From sequence record OR538032.1: DNA of 64,000 bases. One strand, written 5' to 3'. Each line of letters starts with the position of its first letter. The first letter of the stretch is position 1. The notes beneath the pieces were generated by a model, which saw only the letters and a program-made list of their open reading frames with translations, had not been told where the DNA came from and did no database searches. Made by a program: the position numbers and the translations under genes. Shown here piece by piece: positions 37,951 through 54,038 of the stretch.

Positions 37951-38001
37951 TTAGTAGAATTAGTAGTTTTAGTGAAGTTAGTAATATTAGGAGTATTAGA
38001 A
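37951..38001 (+). repeat. Six TTAG-headed units with exact 9-bp period
   Basis: TTAG at 37951, 37960, 37969, 37978, 37987, 37996. Confidence 0.85.
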
Positions 38002-38696
38002 TGAAGAAGCTCGTACTTGTAGCTGCCGCTGCTGTAGCTCTTGTTGGATGTGGTGATTTGCCACGTCTGGAAACTAAGACAGACAAGAAATTCACCACGG
38101 TTAATGCAGTTGTGAACAAAAAAGAGCGTGAAATGATTAACTACTGGATGGCAGATGCTGACGGTAGTAACTATCTTTACAACAAGCTTTGGACTGCTCT
38201 TGCTACTCGTAACAAATACGGTTCTAATGCTGTGCGTCGTTCAGATGATGAAGTCCCGTTCTGTGATGTCATTGTAGCCCTTGCTAAATCTGAAGAAGGT
38301 ATTCGAAGCACGTACGAGCGCACATTTAACAATCAGTGGCGAACTCAATACGGCATTAGTCTTAATCAGCAATGTGGCTATACTCCACCAGAAACACTCG
38401 AAGAGCAAGCAGAGCGCATTGAGCAACTTGAAATGCAAGCTGATTTGAAAAAGCGTGAGCAACAAGCACAGAGTATTGAAACGCTTGATGACGTTGCCGA
38501 CGCGACGACTGAGTTACTTGATCCGCATGAGTACGACTATCTGATCGAATCGGCACGCGAGTGTAATCGAGCCAAAACCAAATTGCTTGAACTAACGCAA
38601 GCAGGCAAACCTCTGACACAAGCTGACGGCTCAGATGCACGTAAGCTAATTATCGAATGCAAAATGCATAAACTTGAAGTTGAATTGAATAAGTGA
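38001..38696 (+). CDS. Lipoprotein, paralogue of 50544-51263
   Basis: Lipobox ALVG-C; EVPFCDVI, NQW..QYGI, CNRAK, KLEVELNK. Confidence 0.8.
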   Translation: MKKLVLVAAAAVALVGCGDLPRLETKTDKKFTTVNAVVNKKEREMINYWMADADGSNYLYNKLWTALATRNKYGSNAVRRSDDEVPFCDVIVALAKSEEGIRSTYERTFNNQWRTQYGISLNQQCGYTPPETLEEQAERIEQLEMQADLKKREQQAQSIETLDDVADATTELLDPHEYDYLIESARECNRAKTKLLELTQAGKPLTQADGSDARKLIIECKMHKLEVELNK

Positions 38697-39491: not shown

Positions 39492-39522
39492 ATGCGGGTT
39501 GTTACGACATCCCGCATAAATA
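39492..39522 (+). promoter_or_regulatory. Hairpin overlapping a T4 late-promoter-like CATAAATA
   Basis: ATGCGGG...CCCGCAT stem; CATAAATA at 39515-39522 (T4 late consensus TATAAATA). Confidence 0.45.
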
Positions 39523-39554
39523 GTTCTATATGGACTAACAAGGAAATTACGACA

Positions 39555-40085
39555 ATGCCAACTCCTACAACAGGTGCGATTTCAATCGGTACCGTTCGTG
39601 ATTATTTCAGTAGAACCGGCGCTGCTTCATTGTCTCAGTACTACAGAGGCGGCGGTATTGTTCCTGATATTACTGAAAACGCTCACGTACCAACTTCAGG
39701 CGCGATTAGCTTGAATGATTTGCGCGGTGTATATCGCTTGTCAACGTATACGACATCGTTTACGACAACATACAACACCACGGTTTCGACATCGAATACG
39801 ACTTCGCGTAGTACGTCAAGAAGTACAACTAGAAGTACTGCATACAATACAACTCGCTCGACTGCGTATACTACTACTTGGACAACTAGTCGAACTACGT
39901 CGGTGACTAAAGGTTCGTATTCGACATCATACACGACTTCTCGTGCTACATCACGTTCAACAGCATATAGCACGACACGTTCAACAGCTTATACGTCTAC
40001 GTGGACAACATCATGGACAACTACGTACAACACAACAATATCAACATCAAACACAACTTCACGAAGCACGCAAGTTGCAGTTTAA
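39555..40085 (+). CDS. Ser/Thr-rich repeat protein, probable fibre/needle or modification substrate
   Basis: RBS AAGGAA; start MPTPTT; two GAIS-type motifs; 28 tetrapeptide units around a TKGS turn. Confidence 0.8.
   Translation: MPTPTTGAISIGTVRDYFSRTGAASLSQYYRGGGIVPDITENAHVPTSGAISLNDLRGVYRLSTYTTSFTTTYNTTVSTSNTTSRSTSRSTTRSTAYNTTRSTAYTTTWTTSRTTSVTKGSYSTSYTTSRATSRSTAYSTTRSTAYTSTWTTSWTTTYNTTISTSNTTSRSTQVAV
39747..40082 (+). repeat. Coding tetrapeptide repeat (large residue + three mostly S/T), 14+14 units
   Basis: Y/F/W/R/V/I/N every fourth residue; arms share TTTYNTT[VI]STSNTTSRST and RSTAY.TTRSTAYT.TWTTS blocks. Confidence 0.9.
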
Positions 40086-40097
40086 CAAGGTTAAATT

Positions 40098-40316
40098 ATG
40101 AGCTACAATGAAGAACACGAGAACCGAATCAACGAGCTTGAGAACAAGGTTTCAAAGCTTGAGTCGATAATTGAAAATCTGGTTGAGTCAATGACTTCGA
40201 ACAGCGAAGCTATTATCGAACATATTGCATCACTTGAGACCGAGAGAGATTCGATTCTTGCATCATATGATGACAAACTTAATGAGATCGTGACCAAATA
40301 TGAACCCAAGCAATAG
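40098..40316 (+). CDS. Small coiled-coil protein
   Basis: Heptads INELENKVSKLESIIENL. Confidence 0.7.
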   Translation: MSYNEEHENRINELENKVSKLESIIENLVESMTSNSEAIIEHIASLETERDSILASYDDKLNEIVTKYEPKQ

Positions 40317-41154
40317 AGAAATGACTGGGTTCAATAACATTTCTCGCACCGGTAAGTTGAAATTACAAGCCGATGCAGACAACGTCCGTGCCATGTGTAT
40401 GGACGTTGTTCGTTTATTGAACTCCAAAAATATACCATCTAACTTCGACATCAATCACAATGACGGTGGTAACATCGGCGTGCATGAATGGGTGTCACAA
40501 ATCCGCTTCATTCACTTGAAATACATGAACGTTAATTTTCAAACGAAGATTTTCAAGCATGCCTATCACAACACTGAAAACGTCGTTGACTATTTTGACA
40601 CGTTCAAACATTCTGACAAATATCATCTTTCAGCGAAGCCTCGATTCTTAGAATATGAAAACGTCGTATTTCTATGCGGATCGAATGTACTTGAATTGGC
40701 AATTGACTTTGACAAGATTGATGCGTTGGTCGAACAATATCCTGATTTGGTGATTAAACCTCACCCGATTACGACGTTGTATTACATCAATATGCTTAAA
40801 TCTCGATATGGTTCAAAGCGAATTCTATCTCAGAAGATCAGTGGTGTTGATGTGCTTAAAGCTTCTAAACGTGTTTGGCTGCCTTCAACGTCTGAGTTCT
40901 GGTTCAGTGCTTTGAACTACGACAAAGAAATCGGGTTTATATCTAAAGATGGTTTCTGTGGAACATACACGTCAATCATCAACGCAGTGTGGGAATTGCA
41001 TGAAGAAACTGGTGATTCGCTGAAAGATATTGTGAATAAAATTATCTCGTCACCTTACTCAGGTCTTTATGGTAATATGACAGACTTTGAAGCGCATCAC
41101 GAGAAATACTGCAATGTGATTCTAGAACTCGGGGGCAATTTCGATAATGTATGA
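40300..41154 (+). CDS. GT-B fold glycosyltransferase-like (KpsS/sialyltransferase-type motifs)
   Basis: LVIKPHP followed by VLKASKRVWLPSTSEFWFSALNYDKEI. Confidence 0.6.
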   Translation: MNPSNREMTGFNNISRTGKLKLQADADNVRAMCMDVVRLLNSKNIPSNFDINHNDGGNIGVHEWVSQIRFIHLKYMNVNFQTKIFKHAYHNTENVVDYFDTFKHSDKYHLSAKPRFLEYENVVFLCGSNVLELAIDFDKIDALVEQYPDLVIKPHPITTLYYINMLKSRYGSKRILSQKISGVDVLKASKRVWLPSTSEFWFSALNYDKEIGFISKDGFCGTYTSIINAVWELHEETGDSLKDIVNKIISSPYSGLYGNMTDFEAHHEKYCNVILELGGNFDNV

Positions 41155-41779
41155 TTATGTAATTCACACGTCGATCAGTGACAAAAGTCAGTTAAACCAA
41201 CTTGCAATGTTTGTCGGGTCTTTCATCGAGACACACAAGAAAGGTCGCGTTGTCTGCGTGACTGATCTTGAACTTGATTTCACGATGCCTCGGCTGTCAT
41301 TTGAGAAAAAACTACCCGAAGAGTACGTTTTCATTTCAGTTGACAATCTATTTTTGCAAAAAACATACGGCGTGGTTAGCTACATTGATAGCGGCACTTG
41401 GCGATGTACTTGGCAAAAGAATGACCATGATGAGTTCGTTATTAAAAAGCATGGCGAAAGAAGCGGGTTGATTAACCCTGATATTGCGATTGCAAATTAC
41501 AATGTTTCGAGACATGGTGACCTCGACATGTATTACAACGCGCTTCGTTACATTGAGAACGCCATCACGATCAACTGCAAAGACTTTGCTCCTGCTGCTG
41601 AGAATAAAATCAACAGCTTTTACACGCTTGTATTTCCATGGGAGATTTATTTTCACGTTATGATCACTTACCAAGAGTATATTGATTCTGAATACGTTGA
41701 GCGAGTTCGCGCTAACTGTCATAAGTTCGCACACTCGGTTTATTACAGAAAATCAGGGTTGTTGCGTGATGGGTTATGA
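41147..41779 (+). CDS. Possible degenerate GT-A (GT8-like) glycosyltransferase
   Basis: AMFVGSFIETH...VVCVTD and YVFISVDNLF (imperfect DxD). Confidence 0.35.
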   Translation: MYDYVIHTSISDKSQLNQLAMFVGSFIETHKKGRVVCVTDLELDFTMPRLSFEKKLPEEYVFISVDNLFLQKTYGVVSYIDSGTWRCTWQKNDHDEFVIKKHGERSGLINPDIAIANYNVSRHGDLDMYYNALRYIENAITINCKDFAPAAENKINSFYTLVFPWEIYFHVMITYQEYIDSEYVERVRANCHKFAHSVYYRKSGLLRDGL

Positions 41780-42452
41780 TGAGATAATTCTAGTATCTGG
41801 GCTTGATAGTTTAGTTCTATACGAATTTCTTGAACGAAAGCCACACCCTGTTTACTTTAAATGGGGTTTTGCTATCGACGAACTTGAAATGGCTGCTTTG
41901 CCTGAAGAAACAACTATCATAGAAATGCCAGAGATTTTGCATTTGAAACATGATCCGTATGAGTTCAAGACGCCACGAAATCCCGATTTAATTGGTCGGA
42001 ATACGTTGATGTTTAACTCAGTTTTCCATGCATTTAGACCAAACGTAATTTATCGCGGGATGTTGAAAGGTGATGATTTCTATTACGACGCATCGCCTAC
42101 GCATTCGGATGAAATCGCAGCTATGTGGTCGAAAATGCTGAATAAAGATTGTCGAATTGAACAACCGTTCAAAGACAAAACGAAACGTGACATAATGCAA
42201 ATGGCGGTTGAATACGGGATTGACGCGAATTCATTGCAGCATTGTTACAATCGAGAACATAACTGTGGTCGATGTAGCAAGTGTGTAGATGCACATGTTA
42301 ATTCTATGTATACCGACAATCCAGACATCATGTGGCTGAAACGAATAGTTAATGACTCGGGTATGGCAGCATTGGCTAATCACATGTTTGGTGTTGATAC
42401 CGTTGACAGAATCAAGGAATTTCTAGATGAATTTGATCGAACAGACCGCTGA
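41769..42452 (+). CDS. QueC-like PP-loop ATPase
   Basis: VSGLDS, GRNTLMF, YYDAS, EQPF...TKRDI, CYNREHNCGRCSKC; start moved to ATG 41769. Confidence 0.75.
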   Translation: MGYDEIILVSGLDSLVLYEFLERKPHPVYFKWGFAIDELEMAALPEETTIIEMPEILHLKHDPYEFKTPRNPDLIGRNTLMFNSVFHAFRPNVIYRGMLKGDDFYYDASPTHSDEIAAMWSKMLNKDCRIEQPFKDKTKRDIMQMAVEYGIDANSLQHCYNREHNCGRCSKCVDAHVNSMYTDNPDIMWLKRIVNDSGMAALANHMFGVDTVDRIKEFLDEFDRTDR

Positions 42453-43320
42453 TAAATTCGAGCATAGTTACCGAGAAGACGTTCAAGGCGTACAGTGGTA
42501 TTTCGGTAGTCGAACGCATGATTTTTATCTGTATGGAATAGACTCTCTTATTGATAAAGTCAAAGACTACGATTTTATTGAAATCAAGCATGTTCAAGAG
42601 GGTACGCTGGTTAAACGAGGCGAAGCTGCGGTCACGATTACGATTACAGATCATAGTCGTATCGCATATGGGAACATGATTGAAACATTGTTGTACAATG
42701 AGTTGTGGTATTCGAGCACGGTCGGTACGATTTTACACCGTTGCCTTGATGTGTTGCATGAAAACGGCTATGACGCTCGGTCAGCATACCCTCAAATCGG
42801 ACGAGCGAGTTCAACGCCAGAACAATCAGCTAAAGCAAGGGATATGTTCGCTCGTATATTTTATCAATCATCGAATGAGAAAATACCCGTTGCGATGCAC
42901 AGTGATATTCTAATCAACGGTGAGGAATATTGCATGGAGCATTATAACGGCATCATGATTGATACTTTCGATAAGCAAGCTTGCATTGACTTGATCAACA
43001 AGAAAGACTTTCGAGGGACTGTGATGGTTGACTCTCAGCCAATAATTGAAACAATTGAGAAAGTTCTAGCTGAAACAAAATGCTTTGTTGCACAAGCTGA
43101 AAGTGTTACACTCGATGAGTGGATAGAGATAGTGCGACATTTTAAAGGTAATAATCGAATTTTCTACGGGATTGGTAGCTTTGCATTTAGCAATATATCA
43201 CGAGACACATTTGGGTTGATTTACAAAGTGTGTGCAGTTAAGAGAAACGACAATTGGATCGGTGTTTCAAAGATGACGACAGGTAAACAAACATCGGCTG
43301 GTTATAAGGTTATAGGTTAG
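42427..43320 (+). CDS. Compact divergent NAMPT/NadV-like phosphoribosyltransferase
   Basis: Colinear motifs with NadV at 46486: EGTLV, IETLL...LWYSSTVGT, MHS, IDTFD, YGIG...SRDT, SKM. Confidence 0.75.
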   Translation: MNLIEQTADKFEHSYREDVQGVQWYFGSRTHDFYLYGIDSLIDKVKDYDFIEIKHVQEGTLVKRGEAAVTITITDHSRIAYGNMIETLLYNELWYSSTVGTILHRCLDVLHENGYDARSAYPQIGRASSTPEQSAKARDMFARIFYQSSNEKIPVAMHSDILINGEEYCMEHYNGIMIDTFDKQACIDLINKKDFRGTVMVDSQPIIETIEKVLAETKCFVAQAESVTLDEWIEIVRHFKGNNRIFYGIGSFAFSNISRDTFGLIYKVCAVKRNDNWIGVSKMTTGKQTSAGYKVIG

Positions 43321-43322
43321 TT

Positions 43323-44312
43323 ATGAATTATTGTATATCGCCATTTACATCGCCGTCTATTACACCAGACGGTTTTAAAATTTGCACCATGCCGGGTCAG
43401 AAAGTATACCCTGATATTTCATTCTGGAATAGTGATGAAGTGATCAAGATTCGCGAACAGATTATCGCTGGTGAAATACCTGAATCGTGTAAGACATGTC
43501 GTAGTATGCGTGACGGGTTGATTGTGTCAAAAGAAAAACCAACTGATACTCATGTTGACTTGAATTTCAAAGCTCTTTACATTGCGCGGTCGAACAAGTG
43601 TGAATATGCTTGTGAAATGTGCAGTTCATCAATCTCACATAGCTATGACAAGAAATACAATGACGGTAAGTTGGGGATTATCGAGAATGACTTTGATGTT
43701 ATTCCGTACCTGCACGAAACACAAGCCGTTGCTATTTCGGGCGGGAACCCTGTCATTGACAAAAAGGTTGCAGAGATTCTTGAGAATCTAGACCCTGACG
43801 TGGTAAAACATTTCATCATTACCTCAAATGGTACAGTCTTTCCAGACAGATTCTTGAATGCAATTAAGCGATTGAAATGCAACGCGACTATGATATTCTC
43901 TATGGACGGACCGAAAGAGTTTAATGAAGTGGTTCGATCTGGTGCGAAGCAAGAGAGAATCTATCGCACCATTAATCGAGTTCTTGACGAGATTGAAGAT
44001 TACCCAAACTTGCATGTGGCAATTGAATACACTTTCACGAATAAGTCAATTCATCACTACGTTGATTTGTATGATGAAATGCTCTTCGAGATCAACCCGA
44101 AGCATTTGAAAAACAACAAAGTTAATGTGATTGCGAATATGTGTACATACCCGCATCACCTTAGCGTTACAACTGTTCCCAAATCCGTCATTGATGACAT
44201 ATTGTTCAATCAGTTGCCATATTTGAGAAAGCAACCCAGCCCATTGTCAAATCAATTCAAACTTGGTTATGATAAGTTTTTGACTCAGTATCACAACAGC
44301 GTGATTATGTGA
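43323..44312 (+). CDS. Radical SAM protein with N-terminal twitch domain
   Basis: YCISPF..C..CKTC N-terminus; CEYACEMC; SGGNP; TSNGT; SMDG. Confidence 0.85.
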   Translation: MNYCISPFTSPSITPDGFKICTMPGQKVYPDISFWNSDEVIKIREQIIAGEIPESCKTCRSMRDGLIVSKEKPTDTHVDLNFKALYIARSNKCEYACEMCSSSISHSYDKKYNDGKLGIIENDFDVIPYLHETQAVAISGGNPVIDKKVAEILENLDPDVVKHFIITSNGTVFPDRFLNAIKRLKCNATMIFSMDGPKEFNEVVRSGAKQERIYRTINRVLDEIEDYPNLHVAIEYTFTNKSIHHYVDLYDEMLFEINPKHLKNNKVNVIANMCTYPHHLSVTTVPKSVIDDILFNQLPYLRKQPSPLSNQFKLGYDKFLTQYHNSVIM

Positions 44313-45429
44313 TCAGATCATACGCTTTGATGTGTGAGTAAAACTCTGGACACGCAGACGATAAATTAGTTTTCGTCTTCGTGTCTATTCTCTTGTTAAG
44401 CACAAAGAATTCAGGGTTGAATTTACAAACACTGTGTTTCAGAGTAAGACATTCAGCAACGTGCTTGAATGGTCTAGACAAATCCTCACGCCCATCTTTT
44501 AAATACGCTTCTTCTTTCACTTTGAATCTTGATAATAGCTGGTCTCGAAATGCAACTGGAATGTTGTAAATTGAGTATGGATTATCAGGCTCACCAACGA
44601 CATGTACAGACAGACGTACACGTTCACCATCATAAAGCGAATCAAAATCTGAAACCAGTGTTTCAAGATGTTCAAGAGTCACGTTTGACACGGTCGCAGT
44701 GATAACTACATCAAAGTGTTCCTTGATGATTTCAATGTTTGATTTGACTTTCTTGATGTCTGCAAACAATCGAATATAATCTTGGTATTCTCGTAGACCG
44801 TCGATTGATACGAACACCGTTGATGCATTAGCTTCTTTAAGCGATTTGATGAGATCTGAGCCATCGGCTAACACTAGTGATGAACCATTCGTGAAAATAT
44901 TCACCGTGCCTTTAATGTCGCCTACGCTGCGAAGAACTTCAGGAGCATTTGACGAGCGGGTAATTTCACCACCTAGAATTGTCAATGATGAAAGCCCTTT
45001 GCTGATTGTGTTGATTGTCGTACTCAAATCATTGAATCGAGTACTTGAATCTTCTTCATTAAACAATCTAGCTTTCAAGTCTGATAATTTGCTATAGCAG
45101 TAACGACAAGCGTGGTTACATTCATTACTAGGGAATACTTGTAGCCAGCGAACTGAATCGGCAGGCATGATTGGTGAAACTTCAGAATCGTGTTCGGTTA
45201 GGCGCTGTGGATCATTATCAGTGATGCACATTTGACATGCCTTTGATAGCTTGCTCATGTCGTGGTTTAGCATTGCTTCACGATAAGCGACAAGCTTTTC
45301 ATCATTCCAAGCGTCTGCTAGTGTTTTTTCATCAGTAAACCATTCATAATCAGCCGAACAGCAAAACGTAATTTGATTGTTTGCTCGTGTGATGAACTGC
45401 TTGAACGGCATATAACATAGTGGTTTCAT
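44305..45429 (-). CDS. Radical SAM protein with N-terminal twitch domain
   Basis: LCYMPF..FCC..CQMC; CNHACRYC; LGGE; FTNGS; SIDG. Confidence 0.85.
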   Translation of the reverse strand: MKPLCYMPFKQFITRANNQITFCCSADYEWFTDEKTLADAWNDEKLVAYREAMLNHDMSKLSKACQMCITDNDPQRLTEHDSEVSPIMPADSVRWLQVFPSNECNHACRYCYSKLSDLKARLFNEEDSSTRFNDLSTTINTISKGLSSLTILGGEITRSSNAPEVLRSVGDIKGTVNIFTNGSSLVLADGSDLIKSLKEANASTVFVSIDGLREYQDYIRLFADIKKVKSNIEIIKEHFDVVITATVSNVTLEHLETLVSDFDSLYDGERVRLSVHVVGEPDNPYSIYNIPVAFRDQLLSRFKVKEEAYLKDGREDLSRPFKHVAECLTLKHSVCKFNPEFFVLNKRIDTKTKTNLSSACPEFYSHIKAYDLIT

Positions 45430-45439
45430 GCTTCTGTCC

Positions 45440-46012
45440 TTAGTTAAAAATGCTACTTGTATATATAGCGGTCTTCAGGGCATTGAAATGATCGTCAACT
45501 CTATTCACGTGTATGCATTCAATGTCAAATCTTTCTTGGATTTCTCGGATGTTGTCTAGCGAGTCGTCGATGAAGTACTTCACATCATGCAGTTCACACA
45601 GCTTCTCGACATACTTTGCCTTCGAGTCGAAGTACTCAATCGAAATCACTTCACTTATCATTCCTGGGAATAACGCATTTAGATTATGCACGCGATTTGA
45701 CCATGAAGTTCTACTCATGCTGAACTTGGTTAGTGCAATGATGTTATAACGGTCTGAGAGTTCGCGTAACGCATCGTAAGCGTCTTCATATGCTGGTATG
45801 TACTTTGCACACTCATGTTCATTGTATGCCCCTATAAGCTTTCCTAGTTGCATGTCGCTCACGTTAATAAATAAAGAGCGTGCATCGGTATCAGTATTTG
45901 AACCGTTGATATTCAAATTATCAAGCATGCCTAATTGCATCATGAAGAATGGCAAGTTGGCTTTCCAGTTAAGCAAAACCCCGTCTACATCTATGATGAT
46001 AGTCTTTTTCAT
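45440..46012 (-). CDS. HAD phosphatase, 5'(3')-nucleotidase-like
   Basis: IDVDGVLL, ALTK, K, FIDDSLDN; RBS GAGG. Confidence 0.8.
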   Translation of the reverse strand: MKKTIIIDVDGVLLNWKANLPFFMMQLGMLDNLNINGSNTDTDARSLFINVSDMQLGKLIGAYNEHECAKYIPAYEDAYDALRELSDRYNIIALTKFSMSRTSWSNRVHNLNALFPGMISEVISIEYFDSKAKYVEKLCELHDVKYFIDDSLDNIREIQERFDIECIHVNRVDDHFNALKTAIYTSSIFN

Positions 46013-46147: not shown

Positions 46148-46384
46148 ATGAAAAACTTCAAATCAATCGCAACTGCACTTCTTCTAACTATGACTTTCTC
46201 TGCTGGTGCTTTCGCACACGGCTCAGGTGGTACGCTAGGTGGTAACCTTGGCATCGAAATGTGCAAAATCGGAGCAATCAACTGCGGCTTCCCTAAACAA
46301 GAAGTTAAAGTTGAAAAAGAAGCACCAAAAGCTGAAAAGGCTGAGGTGAAAGAAGTTAAGCTGGCAACTGATCTGACAGCTTAA
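46148..46384 (+). CDS. Small secreted protein
   Basis: Signal peptide ending AGAFA; mature part with C-x6-C and Lys/Glu tail. Confidence 0.7.
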   Translation: MKNFKSIATALLLTMTFSAGAFAHGSGGTLGGNLGIEMCKIGAINCGFPKQEVKVEKEAPKAEKAEVKEVKLATDLTA

Positions 46385-46485: not shown

Positions 46486-47979
46486 ATGCTAAATCTTACT
46501 CAAAATATCGCAATCGCAACTGACAGCTACAAAGTTTCACACTGGTCTCAATTCCCTCGTGGTCTAGAGTACAGCCAATATTACGTCGAAAGCCGGGGTG
46601 GTAAGTTCGACAAAATTATGGTCGATGGTATGGCATACATGTGTCGTATTCTCGAAAAAGGTGTTTCGATGAACGATGTCAAGCGTGCGAAACGTCTGTT
46701 CAAAAAGCACTTCGGTTCTGAAGTCTTCAATGACAAGGGTTGGGACATCATCGTTAACGAACTGAAAGGCAAACTGCCTATTAAGATTCGTGCGGTCAAA
46801 GAAGGTACTGTAGTACCAGTTAAACACCCTATCTTGACGATTGAGAACACAGATCCGCGTTTTGGTTGGCTGCCTGGCTATCTTGAAACGTTCATCTTGC
46901 GTGCTCTTTGGTACCCGACAACTGTAGCAACGATCTCGTTCGAAGTGAAGAAAATCATTCGCCAATTCATGAAGAAGACGGTTGATGATGAACGCATTGC
47001 AGAACAAGAGCCGTTCAAACTTCACGACTTTGGTTCTCGTGGTGTATCAAGTGGCGAATCAGCGGCTATCGGCGGCTCTGCTCACTTGAAAAACTTCTTG
47101 GGTACTGACACTGTAGAAGCACTTGTTGCAGTTGAAGAACTTTACGCTGAAGATGTTGAAGATTTCATTGCGGGATTCTCTATCCCTGCACGTGAACACT
47201 CAACAACTACAATCTACAAAGAAGTTGGTGAAGATCAAGCATTCTTGAACTCTATCGAGCAATGGGGTGCGGCATTATACGCTTGTGTAATGGACAGCTA
47301 CGACTACGAAGCAGCAATGAATCGTGTCTCGACTGGTCGCTTCAAAGAGCTAATCATCAGCAAAGGCGGTACGTTTGTTGCTCGTCCTGACTCTGGTGTG
47401 CCTGTAGATGTAGTAATGAAAGGTCTTGAGATTCTTGGTAAAAACGTTGGTTATACAATCAACAGCAAGGGTTACAAAGTATTGCACCCTAGCTACCGCA
47501 TCATTCAAGGCGACGGCGTGAACATCGAAGAAATTCGTCGAATTCTGTCTTACATGGAAAGTAAAGGCTGGTCGGCAGAAAACATTGCATTTGGCATGGG
47601 TGGTGGTTTGCTTCAGCAACTCGACCGTGATACTCAACGCTTTGCAATGAAAATGTCAGCGGCAATCATCAACGGCGAATACGTTAGCGTGTTCAAAATG
47701 CCGAAGACTGACCCGACAAAAGCATCAAAAGCAGGTTTCTTAGATTTGATTGCAGTCGATGCAGACAATCCGAACCCAGCGGCTCGTGGTTACGTGACGT
47801 TCTCTTCTGAAGATTACGACAATCGCGTACACCCGAAAAGCGTGATGCAGACAATCTTTGAAGACGGTGTAACAGTTGCTGACTTCTCACTCGAAGAAGC
47901 TCGTAAACTGTCTGACGTACAAGCTGATTTCCTGAACGAAGGTGAATGGAAAATCGCGAAAAAGATTCAAACTGCGTAA
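46486..47979 (+). CDS. nadV: Nicotinamide phosphoribosyltransferase
   Basis: ATDSYKVSH, LHDFGSRG, GTDT, PAREHS, RPDSG, QGDGV, GMGGGLLQ, RDT. Confidence 0.95.
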   Translation: MLNLTQNIAIATDSYKVSHWSQFPRGLEYSQYYVESRGGKFDKIMVDGMAYMCRILEKGVSMNDVKRAKRLFKKHFGSEVFNDKGWDIIVNELKGKLPIKIRAVKEGTVVPVKHPILTIENTDPRFGWLPGYLETFILRALWYPTTVATISFEVKKIIRQFMKKTVDDERIAEQEPFKLHDFGSRGVSSGESAAIGGSAHLKNFLGTDTVEALVAVEELYAEDVEDFIAGFSIPAREHSTTTIYKEVGEDQAFLNSIEQWGAALYACVMDSYDYEAAMNRVSTGRFKELIISKGGTFVARPDSGVPVDVVMKGLEILGKNVGYTINSKGYKVLHPSYRIIQGDGVNIEEIRRILSYMESKGWSAENIAFGMGGGLLQQLDRDTQRFAMKMSAAIINGEYVSVFKMPKTDPTKASKAGFLDLIAVDADNPNPAARGYVTFSSEDYDNRVHPKSVMQTIFEDGVTVADFSLEEARKLSDVQADFLNEGEWKIAKKIQTA

Positions 47980-51715: not shown

Positions 51716-52768
51716 TCATTTCACCATTTTGATTTGAATCTGATTGTCCATGTAAGCCATTTTCTTTTCAAATTCAACATCATATTCTGGTCGATGTTCG
51801 TATTCGACTGAAAGCATTTGCTTCAGACAACGGTACAATTCCGACTTGTAATACCCTTCTTTCATTCCCTTCATCTGTTCATATTGCTTTTTCATAGCAG
51901 CTTTGATTATCTTCGGGTCCATGAATTTGATTGACATTTCTCGCGGTGCTTTTACTGTGCCAAAGTCAACAAACACCTGAGCCTTTTCAGCTACTTGAAT
52001 GAAGTCATAAATCGTGTCATAACTCATTCGACTTAGCGTGTGGTGCATACAAACATGTTTGCTATGTTCTTTTAGCAACGGTACATTTGCAAGCATCAAG
52101 TCGTGGTCGATGTTCTGACGAATGTATTCGTTGCGCTCTTTTCCGCCGTCACATGAAATTGTAAACACTAGACGATGTTTGTACTTTTTACATATGGCTA
52201 GAATCTTCTTCGCAAGTGTCGTATGCAACACAGTACCATTTGTCAGAATGTAAACTTCCGCATTTGTTTCTTCCATGACTTCAGTCAGAACTTCGACTGT
52301 TCTCTTGTCCATGAACGGTTCGCCGCCGTATAGCACAACAGTTTCAACACCCTTCGGGATACTGAAATCGAGTTGTGTGTAATCGTAATGGTCGTCAATG
52401 TCATACAAGTCCATGTATGTTTTGCTATTCTTGCCATAGCACATTCGACACGCTAGGTTACATTTGTTTGACATCAATATTTGAATTGTTCTAGGATGCT
52501 CTTCGAGTGCTTCATATTCGAAGTACTTCTGATCAGACAATTCGCCATAACTCATACATTCTTTGCAGTATTCTGGTAAAGTGTCATACTCAAACATTTT
52601 GGCACGATGTTCATTGATGATGTCACTGTGCCACCAGTCTTCAACGTTCGGGAATGGTTCACTTAGCTGAGAACAGCAAATGTGATACCCATCTGGTTTT
52701 GCGTCACGTGTATTAAAGGGAGAGCCACAAAGTGGTCTCTTCCCGTCTTTAAATCCGAATTTATCCAT
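51716..52768 (-). CDS. Radical SAM protein with N-terminal twitch domain
   Basis: LCGSPF..ICC..CKEC; CNLACRMC; YGGEPF; LTNGT; SCDG. Confidence 0.85.
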   Translation of the reverse strand: MDKFGFKDGKRPLCGSPFNTRDAKPDGYHICCSQLSEPFPNVEDWWHSDIINEHRAKMFEYDTLPEYCKECMSYGELSDQKYFEYEALEEHPRTIQILMSNKCNLACRMCYGKNSKTYMDLYDIDDHYDYTQLDFSIPKGVETVVLYGGEPFMDKRTVEVLTEVMEETNAEVYILTNGTVLHTTLAKKILAICKKYKHRLVFTISCDGGKERNEYIRQNIDHDLMLANVPLLKEHSKHVCMHHTLSRMSYDTIYDFIQVAEKAQVFVDFGTVKAPREMSIKFMDPKIIKAAMKKQYEQMKGMKEGYYKSELYRCLKQMLSVEYEHRPEYDVEFEKKMAYMDNQIQIKMVK

Positions 52769-53040
52769 TAATCTAGCTCATCAAGAAGTGATTGAAATTC
52801 TTCGTCGCGTTCAGCGTCGATTGTACCAGTCATCAACTCTGTTAGAGTCTTCAACGACTTGATCTCTGGTGGTTGAGGGCGTAGATCTTCGAGAATGTGA
52901 ATGATTGACTCGGCTGGGAGATCGTGATTTACAATCTCATCAGGCAGGTGGTGTTTGTAAACGCAGTCGTCGCCCCAATCAATAACTACTGCATGTTCCC
53001 ATTTGTCGATTTCTAGTATTTTAAAATTTGGTTTCATCAT
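52768..53040 (-). CDS. Small acidic hypothetical protein
   Basis: ATGA and TAATG coupling to both neighbours; start MMKPNF. Confidence 0.7.
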   Translation of the reverse strand: MMKPNFKILEIDKWEHAVVIDWGDDCVYKHHLPDEIVNHDLPAESIIHILEDLRPQPPEIKSLKTLTELMTGTIDAERDEEFQSLLDELD

Positions 53041-54038
53041 AAGCCCCAGAGTTCTTTCCAATGTGTTTTAGCATCTTGTCGATACTTCTCAATGTCAAAT
53101 TTTTGATATTTCTGTTCGATTGCATCATCAATGACGCGAATCAACGTATCATTGTTTATATCAGCACGAATCACTGGGAAAATAAAATCCCTTGTGTAAG
53201 GTGCGTCATGCTGAACAATACAAGGTATGTACTGACATGCTTCTAATAACGCATATGGCATAATCTCGATTCTAGACATATGAAGCAAAACTTTACTTTT
53301 CATCATATGTGCCATGACTCGCTCACGCCGTTGACAAGTTTCGACTATACAATCAACCCCACTCGGGATTCTTATTGGTTCGGTTGTGAATAGACGAATT
53401 TTAAGACCGCTGTATGCAAGCGCGTTTAGCATTTCGGGTATCTGCTTACGTTTGTATGCACCTGACACGATAATCACGTCAGACGCTTCAGCAGCGTCAA
53501 TATCAGCTTGTGATATAGACGGAAGCTCAAATGGTTCAAATGCAGTCACATGTTTGCCACCAATTACTTCTCGACCCCATTGTGCAATCCCGTTCGATTG
53601 AGCAATGTTAGTGACTAATGACGTTGACATCATGTGTCGCCATTGAGGTAAGTTGTAAATTTGATGAATGTCCATGTATTCGCGATATGAATCTGGTACT
53701 ATCAAGTCACCGAAATGATGTTGGTTGTAACAACGGCGCTTCGCTTCGATACATGCGCGGAGTGCTTCATATGAATGCGTGTAGATAATCGCTTCGCTAT
53801 CAATCGCGTTGATAACCATTGCGTTTGCCTTGTAGTCTTTATAAGACCGTTTCGTTAAAATGAAGTCACACCCGAAATCCCATTTGCTCACGTGTGGACA
53901 CGATTCGTCTCCGAGTACAATAACTTTGACATCACAGTTTAGTGATTGCATTAAACGAACGTGATCTTGAATGAATGTGTAAATACCGCCGCCAATTCCC
54001 AACATAAAGTCAGTTACTACGTAGCGAACTTTTTTCAT
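53037..54038 (-). CDS. GT4-like glycosyltransferase
   Basis: GIGGGIYTF acceptor loop; E-x7-E motif EIMPYALLEA followed by IPCI; RBS AGGAG. Confidence 0.7.
   Translation of the reverse strand: MKKVRYVVTDFMLGIGGGIYTFIQDHVRLMQSLNCDVKVIVLGDESCPHVSKWDFGCDFILTKRSYKDYKANAMVINAIDSEAIIYTHSYEALRACIEAKRRCYNQHHFGDLIVPDSYREYMDIHQIYNLPQWRHMMSTSLVTNIAQSNGIAQWGREVIGGKHVTAFEPFELPSISQADIDAAEASDVIIVSGAYKRKQIPEMLNALAYSGLKIRLFTTEPIRIPSGVDCIVETCQRRERVMAHMMKSKVLLHMSRIEIMPYALLEACQYIPCIVQHDAPYTRDFIFPVIRADINNDTLIRVIDDAIEQKYQKFDIEKYRQDAKTHWKELWGL

Follow-up and report, generated by a model that had tools for sequence, protein, structure and literature searches.

The 64,000-nt stretch of sequence record OR538032.1 analyzed here (the window) carries, at positions 39555 to 46012, a block of nine genes that an earlier note, written from the sequence alone, had read as a phage locus for protein tailoring. 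Megablast identified the region as Vibrio phage PG216, with 100% identity and identical coordinates. PG216 is a KVP40-like member of the genus Schizotequatrovirus, and the region is 96 to 98% identical to those of KVP40, phi-pp2, and their relatives; the KVP40 counterpart consists of genes KVP40.0254 to 0262. Receptor-binding appendages set phage host range and particle recognition, and their chemical tailoring has been documented in few phage groups. The block comprises the following open reading frames (ORFs), with product lengths in amino acids (aa):

39555..40085, + strand: Ser/Thr-rich protein of appendage type, 176 aa (ORF, translation, and homologs)
40098..40316, + strand: coiled-coil protein, 72 aa (weak Pfam coiled-coil matches; phrog_5851)
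40300..41154, + strand: GT-B-fold glycosyltransferase-like protein, 284 aa (AlphaFold2 [AF2] model and Foldseek)
41147..41779, + strand: 210-aa protein with no family match (ORF; vibriophages only)
41766..42452, + strand: QueC-family PP-loop protein, 228 aa (PF06508, 36.3 bits)
42427..43320, + strand: trimmed NAMPT/NAPRT-like type II phosphoribosyltransferase, 297 aa (PF04095, 27.4 bits)
43323..44312, + strand: radical S-adenosylmethionine (SAM) protein, probably of the N-terminal twitch type, 329 aa (PF04055; NF033640, 117 bits; phrog_14086)
44305..45429, - strand: paralogous radical SAM protein, probably of the N-terminal twitch type, 374 aa (PF04055, 50 bits; NF033640, 127 bits)
45440..46012, - strand: T4 30.2-like phosphatase-like protein of the haloacid dehalogenase (HAD) superfamily, 190 aa (phrog_420, 5e-39)

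All of these ORFs are present, and the tight plus-strand run with overlapping stop and start codons is real: successive genes from 40098 onward overlap by 17, 8, 14, and 26 nt, followed by a 2-nt gap, and the gene for the 374-aa radical SAM protein is convergent with that for the 329-aa protein. Searches with hidden Markov models (HMMs) and structures upheld eight of the nine gene labels that had been proposed from the sequence.

The first gene encodes a protein of two distinct parts. Its ORF opens at 39492, and because every homolog begins at the "MP" equivalent to 39555, we take the latter position to be the correct start. Residues 1 to 62 make up a conserved N-terminal domain that contains a pair of "SGxIS.." motifs and a YYRGG..VP stretch, and residues 63 to 176 form a Thr/Ser tail with a strict period of 4, [T][T/S][R/W/Y/F/K][S/T/N], interrupted by a central KGSY linker where relatives have CxxGxC. 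Autocorrelation of the tail was 18 to 25 at lag 4 and 0 to 3 at lags 1 to 3 and 5 to 7, with the multiples of 4 at lags 8 and 12 also giving high values. The tail gene has essentially no tandem repeat at the DNA level (one 12-nt unit in 1.9 copies), so it is at the protein level that selection maintains the pattern. We rejected a "cell wall mannoprotein" annotation of this protein as a low-complexity artifact. Homologs are present in the divergent vibriophages D479, F86, and 6E35.1a (L004:8263-8775, L005:8182-8739, and L006:9234-9767, respectively), yet the gene is unannotated in D479 and F86 and was also left out of the re-annotation behind the virion proteomics of 6E35.1a. The repeat-protein gene is thus routinely overlooked by gene callers, which biases proteome searches. 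The N-terminal domain recurs in small ORFs directly after tail-fiber genes in Xanthomonas phage RTH11, Stenotrophomonas phage DLP_6, Ralstonia phage YL1, and others, where it is joined to very different C-terminal domains (Ig-like or Gly-rich), and at one locus (L051) it lies directly upstream of a homolog of the GT-B enzyme. This distribution fits a role of the N-terminal domain as the anchor of a virion appendage whose distal part is exchangeable, and it is in keeping with the fiber-type role that the earlier note had assigned to the first gene product.

The AF2 model of the 284-aa protein (predicted local distance difference test [pLDDT] 80, predicted template modeling score 0.81) has a GT-B fold. 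Its best Foldseek matches in the PDB were KpsC (8fuw, 2e-5) and WbbB (8csd, 3e-5), followed by KrkA, LpxB, and other GT-B enzymes; against KpsC, WbbB, and KrkA the E values were 2e-5 to 1e-3 and the probabilities 0.98 to 1.0, with 11 to 13% identity. A word-based protein search with the single 284-aa query found only 2 close relatives, and a search for related loci with an alignment of close relatives returned KVP40 only, but a tblastn-derived alignment reached further, and a profile built from the vibriophage and Caulobacter-phage relatives recovered 24 proteins. In the family alignment of 25 sequences, which are 18 to 26% identical, K153-x-H155-P156 (the "HP" motif) is invariant in every sequence, as are G127-x-N129, G182, E199, K107-Y108, and G255, and S198 is nearly invariant; E199 is the sole invariant acidic residue after the HP motif. 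Of these, KxHP, GxN, E199, and G182 are residues of a donor-binding or catalytic type. [quoted passage not shown] The gathering score of GT52 (PF07922) was not reached (19.6 bits against a cutoff of 26.1), and the match covers the HP region only. Judging from the model and the motif, the 284-aa protein is probably a GT-B transferase of the HP-motif, CMP-ulosonic-acid type, which we do not place in GT99 or GT107. It shares with the retaining beta-Kdo transferases KpsC (GT107), WbbB (GT99), and KrkA a GT-B-derived two-domain fold and the invariant His-Pro; it differs from them in being smaller, in lacking a conserved QxxxD motif, and in its putative acceptor, which would be a protein rather than a lipid-linked glycan.

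The Thr/Ser repeat protein, the small coiled-coil ORF, and the GT-B enzyme form a unit, which we call Module A, and homologs of the GT-B enzyme are found in both T4-like and T7-like phages. In the T7-like Caulobacter phage Lullwater, a tail-fiber gene is followed by a 215-aa Thr-rich ORF and then by the GT-B homolog, and in the T4-like Caulobacter phage Cr30 the order is a fiber gene, a Thr/Tyr-rich 116-aa ORF, the GT-B homolog, and neck genes. Metagenomic T4-like contigs carry a 1000- to 1500-aa fiber ending in TSR/TxFN repeats, then a 58- to 75-aa coiled coil, the GT-B gene, and a 246- to 315-aa ORF; these blocks (L009 and L011 included) adjoin the gp13/gp14/gp15 neck genes on the upstream side, at the position of wac in T4. 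The 72-aa coiled-coil ORF of PG216 occupies the same position as the 57- to 76-aa coiled-coil ORFs that precede GT-B homologs in other phages (L011, L013, L014, L052, and DLP_6). An HMM of the vibriophage coiled-coil family found no homologs beyond vibriophages, so these other coiled-coil ORFs are positional analogs only. Across 59 loci, the GT-B homologs fell into 25 clusters at 60% identity or more, of which 24 have upstream DNA. A Thr/Ser-rich ORF or fiber C terminus, defined as a same-strand upstream ORF in which Thr and Ser together make up 50% or more of some 40-aa window, preceded the GT-B gene in 18 of these 24 clusters, against a background of 0.7% of 1703 ORFs. This pairing, kept across unrelated phages, supports the tie that the earlier note drew between the first gene product and the adjoining enzymes, and it points to an unannotated glycosyltransferase family with a repeat-protein partner in marine T4-like, Caulobacter, and Vibrio phages. 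Among the metagenomic loci, L011 adds an 887-aa GT1/GT2 fusion and a sulfotransferase beside Module A.

A second unit, Module B, consists of the QueC-like and NAMPT-like genes. The QueC-like protein exceeded the cutoff of PF06508 (36.3 bits against 22) and did not reach the QueC equivalog TIGR00364 (28.5 bits against 150.3); its best PDB match was Cap9 (9nto_B, E 2e-12), with QueC a close second. In 8 QueC-like sequences from at least four lineages, the zinc-site residues C160, C167, C170, and C173 are invariant, with a C-x6-C rather than a C-x8-C spacing. The PP-loop of canonical QueC is SGGxDS (PMC13329287); members of this clade have xSGxDS or GGxDS instead, with only G12, D14, and S15 invariant. 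The NAMPT-like protein scored 27.4 bits against a PF04095 cutoff of 20.8, fell short of the NAMPT equivalog NF006629 (65.8 bits against 405), and aligned to the phage's own NadV by hhalign with a probability of 96%. We used the hhalign alignment for this comparison because MAFFT misplaced the GR[AS]S segment. With the NadV/NAMPT of KVP40, part of the NARP2 pathway of nicotinamide adenine dinucleotide (NAD) reconstitution, the window protein shares a homologous type II phosphoribosyltransferase barrel, including the invariant catalytic-type His158, D202-S203, and R259-D260-T261, with the GIGS..RDT phosphate loop kept; it differs in its length (297 aa against 497 aa), having lost roughly 80 residues at the N terminus as well as part of the base-binding segment after GR[AS]S. 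Both enzymes of the pair retain metal- or phosphate-site residues without the signatures of the canonical enzymes. The canonical 7-deazaguanine cluster, with the phage's own QueC, is located elsewhere in KVP40, and the true NadV is encoded separately, at 46486-47979, 0.5 kb downstream of the block; for this reason the block copies are, by sequence comparison, divergent paralogs of enzymes encoded elsewhere in the phage. As a side observation, a 1877-aa protein (P0032) contains 32 stretches matching residues 197 to 256 of the NAMPT-like protein (E 2e-22), and is either a repeat protein derived from this segment or a compositional artifact.

The NAMPT-like gene is the best conserved of the block, at about 50% identity between clades, and its family is very small. 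Among 1.84 billion representatives searched with HMMER, just four additional close clusters turned up; a metagenome scan found none, and a genome scan gave one weak partial match in an Anaerolineae metagenome-assembled genome. Three of the four close clusters are in contigs of unrelated metagenomic phages, each adjoining a QueC-like gene within a tail or fiber module. In L064, two giant fibers are followed by a 291-aa protein, a QueC-like gene (hhalign probability 99.9%), a NAMPT-like gene, and a Collar-domain protein; the 291-aa protein has a double "GxISM" motif similar to the N-terminal motif of the first protein of our block, together with a Gly-rich tail. In L066, from an SU10-like phage, the pair lies between a repeat fiber and a tail-tip protein. 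The order in L067 is a Peptidase_S74 fiber, a 166-aa ORF, a QueC-like gene, an RlmN-like radical SAM gene, the NAMPT-like gene, and a second QueC-like gene. The fourth cluster (L065) is bacterial-looking and has no QueC-like neighbor. A second enzyme pair, drawn from queuosine and NAD metabolism, is thus located in tail and tail-fiber modules. The earlier note had all of the enzymes build a single adduct, and these distributions instead resolve two separable modules. The co-occurrence of the repeat protein with the enzymes that it expected from synteny holds for the GT-B pairing and fails for the QueC-like/NAMPT-like pair in L064; there the pair is accompanied by a Gly-rich protein, so that the enzymes do in part occur apart from a Ser/Thr-rich protein, a finding which that note had named as counting against its proposal.

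The 210-aa protein had no Pfam, NCBIfam, PADLOC, or PDB match, and only 4 relatives were found among 5.8e9 proteins, all in vibriophages. The GT-A-like label that had been given to it was not borne out: no family matched, the AF2 model had a pLDDT of 50, the best Foldseek match was not significant (E 0.086, with GT-A enzymes leading the list), and no DxD motif is invariant in the family, of which 4 relatives are known. Its N-terminal beta-alpha-beta stretch, in this poor model, is compatible with a GT-A or Rossmann-like start. We also found no link by hhalign between this protein and the 246- to 315-aa ORFs downstream of the GT-B gene in other phages. The two radical SAM proteins have NF033640 as their best family, at 117 and 127 bits and under its cutoff of 170; both translations share with it the CxxxCxxC motif and N-terminal auxiliary-cluster cysteines, and NF033640 itself has no assigned reaction. 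Among isolated phages, the family of the 374-aa protein is confined to these vibriophages. Viperin matches of the radical SAM proteins in PADLOC were set aside as generic radical SAM similarity. The HAD protein has an N-terminal DVDG (the DxDG motif I) and scored 19.1 bits against the PF00702 cutoff of 26.4. Its gene lies at the right edge of the island here, and also at the island edge in D479, F86, and 6E35.1a, and whether the protein belongs to the tailoring system is uncertain.

Comparison with other vibriophages shows that the block is kept at 31 to 51% amino acid identity in D479, F86, and 6E35.1a, and on this measure it is conserved beyond chance. D479 retains it despite a rearrangement, its only radical SAM gene being located upstream, and in 6E35.1a and F86 there are three further genes, encoding a 223-aa product, a 307-aa product, and a nucleotidyltransferase. 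Searches by tblastn with five core genes (the Ser/Thr N-terminal domain, GT-B, the 210-aa protein, QueC-like, and NAMPT-like) all recovered the same set of 35 vibriophage records; across 50,697 phage records the QueC-like and NAMPT-like queries matched nothing else, not even the canonical paralogs, and the GT-B and N-terminal-domain queries also matched phages of other hosts. All five core genes are jointly missing by tblastn from nt-1, CZ01, K566, and K567. In K566, another island occupies the same site between a conserved 260-aa gene and NadV (L018, OZ196521.1 158000-176000), whose products are a 475-aa lipoprotein, four N-twitch radical SAM proteins, two GT8 enzymes, a GT4-like protein, and PagP, showing that the N-twitch radical SAM family travels with glycan enzymes. 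Phage QD01 has gained a further gene between those for the HAD protein and NadV, encoding an RfaF-like (GT9) heptosyltransferase (L002:13002-14177). A paper in the ISME J has described this region as an anti-defense island exchanged as one unit.

Our best explanation for these observations, which we hold tentatively and at somewhat less than an even chance, is that the products of this locus are a small virion-appendage protein and the enzymes that tailor it, the whole being assembled from two modules that are also found separately; on this footing, the tailoring interpretation of the earlier note is partly supported. The explanation is built on gene content, folds and families, motifs, synteny, and co-occurrence, and from these we infer the substrate relationship, the virion location, and all of the chemistry. 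In Module A, the GT-B enzyme would O-glycosylate the period-4 Thr/Ser tail, using a donor of the CMP-activated ulosonic-acid type, such as the CMP-Kdo already made by the host; a donor of this type is suggested because of the HP motif and because KpsC and WbbB are the closest folds. The coiled-coil protein may be an accessory or assembly factor. In Module B, the QueC-like and NAMPT-like proteins may work jointly, acting either on this same class of fiber-associated protein or on its behalf. Speculatively, and by analogy to Cap9 and QatC, the QueC-like enzyme would use ATP to activate a carboxylated heterocycle, which it would then couple to protein, and its NAMPT-like partner would bind or ribosylate that base. 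Both N-twitch radical SAM enzymes, the 210-aa protein, and the HAD protein would be vibriophage-specific additions that probably tailor the donor or the attached group. The more specific proposal that an appendage protein of these phages receives a nucleobase-type group (the carboxylate of a deazapurine or pyridine, possibly in ribosylated form) through a dedicated QueC-family ligase and a trimmed NAMPT-like enzyme, with Kdo-type O-glycosylation in addition in the KVP40-like phages, is an unlikely one in our estimation, reached by analogy to those defense enzymes.

Several known systems provide points of comparison. In mycobacteriophages, phage-encoded glycosyltransferases modify capsid and tail proteins, and the arrangement here is similar in that a phage glycosyltransferase adjoins the gene of its presumed target protein; it differs in the glycosyltransferase family, in the Gram-negative hosts, in the dedicated period-4 Thr/Ser tail of a fiber-type protein, and in the added QueC-like/NAMPT-like module. 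Bacteria O-glycosylate repeat proteins and surface appendages in several ways, including serine-rich repeat adhesins with GtfA/B, flagellins with nonulosonic acids, and autotransporters by heptosylation. These systems likewise encode a dedicated transferase beside a Ser/Thr-rich surface-appendage substrate, but we detected no sequence relationship to them, and the period of 4 with R/W/Y/F/K and the viral context are distinct. For Module B, the closest parallels are the QueC-family enzymes Cap9 (type IV CBASS) and QatC (QatABCD), which join a deazaguanine carboxylate to the N terminus of a partner protein (10.1101/2025.04.06.647259; PMC13329287). Shared features are the QueC fold, the zinc-cysteine site, the pairing with a remodeled base-handling enzyme, and a small candidate substrate protein nearby. 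The phage enzyme differs in that its partner is a trimmed NAMPT-like protein rather than the TGT-like Cap10 or QatB, in its xSGxDS PP-loop, and in its setting in a phage tail-fiber module rather than a bacterial defense operon, and any conjugation here is putative and read from the genes. PADLOC recovered a QueC model only, with no Cap10, CD-NTase, or Qat partner in the window or in related loci. If the QueC-like enzyme does modify a protein, the reach of nucleobase-protein conjugation would widen beyond bacterial immunity to include virus particles, as a virion-side counterpart of the "deazaguanylation" by Cap9 and QatC in bacterial defense. We found no publication on the combination or on either module, in agreement with the view that it is not known as a described phage system, and an appendage role would offer an alternative reading for genes now filed as "QueC," "NAMPT," or "anti-defense."

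A number of observations weigh against the tailoring explanation. The TM-scores of the GT-B enzyme against KpsC, WbbB, and KrkA are low (0.29 to 0.48), and its family alignments contain no invariant Gln and no QxxxD column, the motif whose Asp nucleophile defines beta-Kdo transferases (PMC10148158). Six of the 24 GT-B clusters fall under the Thr-plus-Ser threshold upstream (0.40 to 0.475), most of them truncated or Thr/Tyr-rich; the upstream ORFs of L008 and L009 are Thr/Tyr-rich rather than Thr/Ser-rich, and in DLP_6 the Module A genes are preceded by an unannotated, non-repeat 492-aa ORF that is not Thr/Ser-rich (L068:177-1655), followed by the coiled-coil ORF, the GT-B homolog, a 250-aa ORF, and neck genes. 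The HMM of the N-terminal domain matches the ORFs upstream of the QueC-like/NAMPT-like pair weakly (E 0.009 in L064 and 0.41 in L067). Co-occurrence in vibriophages concerns a single phage lineage and may stem from shared ancestry, and tail-fiber regions are also hot spots for accessory genes. The locus itself is placed among early-looking small ORFs outside the structural region, and the window has no T4-type late-promoter consensus, with the exact octamer TATAAATA missing from its entire 64 kb. Finally, the single relevant virion proteome, that of 6E35.1a (PMC12028318), includes no island protein, although it is uninformative on the Ser/Thr product because that ORF is missing from the annotation used in the study.

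One alternative is that the GT-B enzyme, the radical SAM proteins, and their partners remodel the host envelope by acting on lipopolysaccharide (LPS) or capsule precursors, with the Ser/Thr protein as an unrelated neighbor. The structures closest to the GT-B enzyme (KpsC, WbbB, KrkA, and LpxB) are indeed those of LPS and capsule enzymes, the island at the same site in K566 and K567 combines a lipoprotein, PagP, and four radical SAM genes with two GT8 genes of the LPS-core type and a GT4-like gene, QD01 has added an RfaF-like heptosyltransferase, and the genes lie in a non-structural genome region that the ISME J paper treats as an anti-defense island replaced as a unit. Envelope remodeling would leave unexplained why the GT-B gene follows Thr/Ser-rich proteins in tail-fiber blocks (18 of 24 clusters against 0.7%) and why the QueC-like/NAMPT-like pair lies between fiber genes in L064, L066, and L067, and we give it a low but appreciable probability; such remodeling could serve, for example, to block superinfection or to keep progeny off debris. 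The three other readings are each weaker. It is quite improbable that the coiled-coil and GT-B-fold proteins are non-catalytic fiber chaperones comparable to T4 gp57A and gp38 that transfer no sugar: a small coiled-coil ORF and an accessory gene right after a fiber are the usual layout of fiber chaperones, the GT-B homolog in L009 is followed by a Phage_tail_APC chaperone, and the QxxxD nucleophile motif is missing, but the residues invariant across 25 sequences (KxHP, GxN, and E199) are of the donor-site type rather than a surface patch, and the glycan enzymes of L011 (the GT1/GT2 fusion and the sulfotransferase) adjoin the module.

The QueC-like, NAMPT-like, radical SAM, and HAD proteins could instead have no connection with the first gene and serve to synthesize or salvage a free small molecule, for which we see little likelihood; candidate products would be a deazapurine nucleoside, by a toyocamycin-like logic, or an NAD-related anti-defense compound. 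The family assignments themselves favor such a role, as do the heavy investment of these phages in NAD salvage and 7-deazaguanine synthesis and the proximity of the true NadV, 0.5 kb downstream. The set of enzyme types present (phosphoribosyltransferase, phosphatase, QueC-type, and radical SAM) also follows the logic of deazapurine nucleoside pathways. Against this, neither the QueC-like nor the NAMPT-like protein reaches a canonical equivalog score, the latter lacks part of the base-binding segment and the former the SGGxDS loop, the N-twitch radical SAM genes are not QueE equivalogs, and the pair is embedded in tail or tail-fiber modules of three other phages. Maturation resembling that of ribosomally synthesized and posttranslationally modified peptides (RiPPs), a product the earlier note had also entertained, fared worst and is in our view very improbable. 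Here the aromatic or Arg residues that recur at regular spacing along the tail would be cross-linked by the radical SAM enzymes, in the way known from triceptide cyclophanes or similar linkages. The presence of R, W, Y, F, or K at each fourth tail residue and weak radical SAM matches to peptide maturases, including the cyclophane-forming YhhB, are consistent with this idea, but radical SAM genes are missing from nearly all other loci with a Thr/Ser repeat and GT-B gene, the same radical SAM family in K566 accompanies glycosyltransferases with no repeat protein, and neither a leader peptide nor a RiPP recognition element domain was detected.

Other features of the window were recorded alongside the block. 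Scans for sigma-70 promoters and terminators in the window returned matches at chance level. At 39494-39525, a GC-rich hairpin is followed by ATAAATAG, about 30 nt upstream of 39555; this arrangement is kept in KVP40 and QD01 and not in distant relatives. Between the HAD gene and NadV, a 78-aa ORF (46148-46384, + strand) has a signal-peptide-like N terminus and a Lys/Glu/Ala-rich tail. A third N-twitch radical SAM paralog (KVP40.0272) is encoded at 51716-52768 (- strand) with two small or uncharacterized partner genes at 52768-53061 (-) and 53037-54038 (-); in contrast to the island copies, it also occurs in nt-1, CZ01, K566, and K567, indicating that it belongs to the core genome. Upstream of the block, at 38001-38696 (+ strand), lies a gene for a lipoprotein-like 231-aa protein with a signal peptide and a Cys lipobox, and the 6E35.1a homolog of this protein, together with a paralog, was found at low counts in virions (PMC12028318, Tables S4 and S8).

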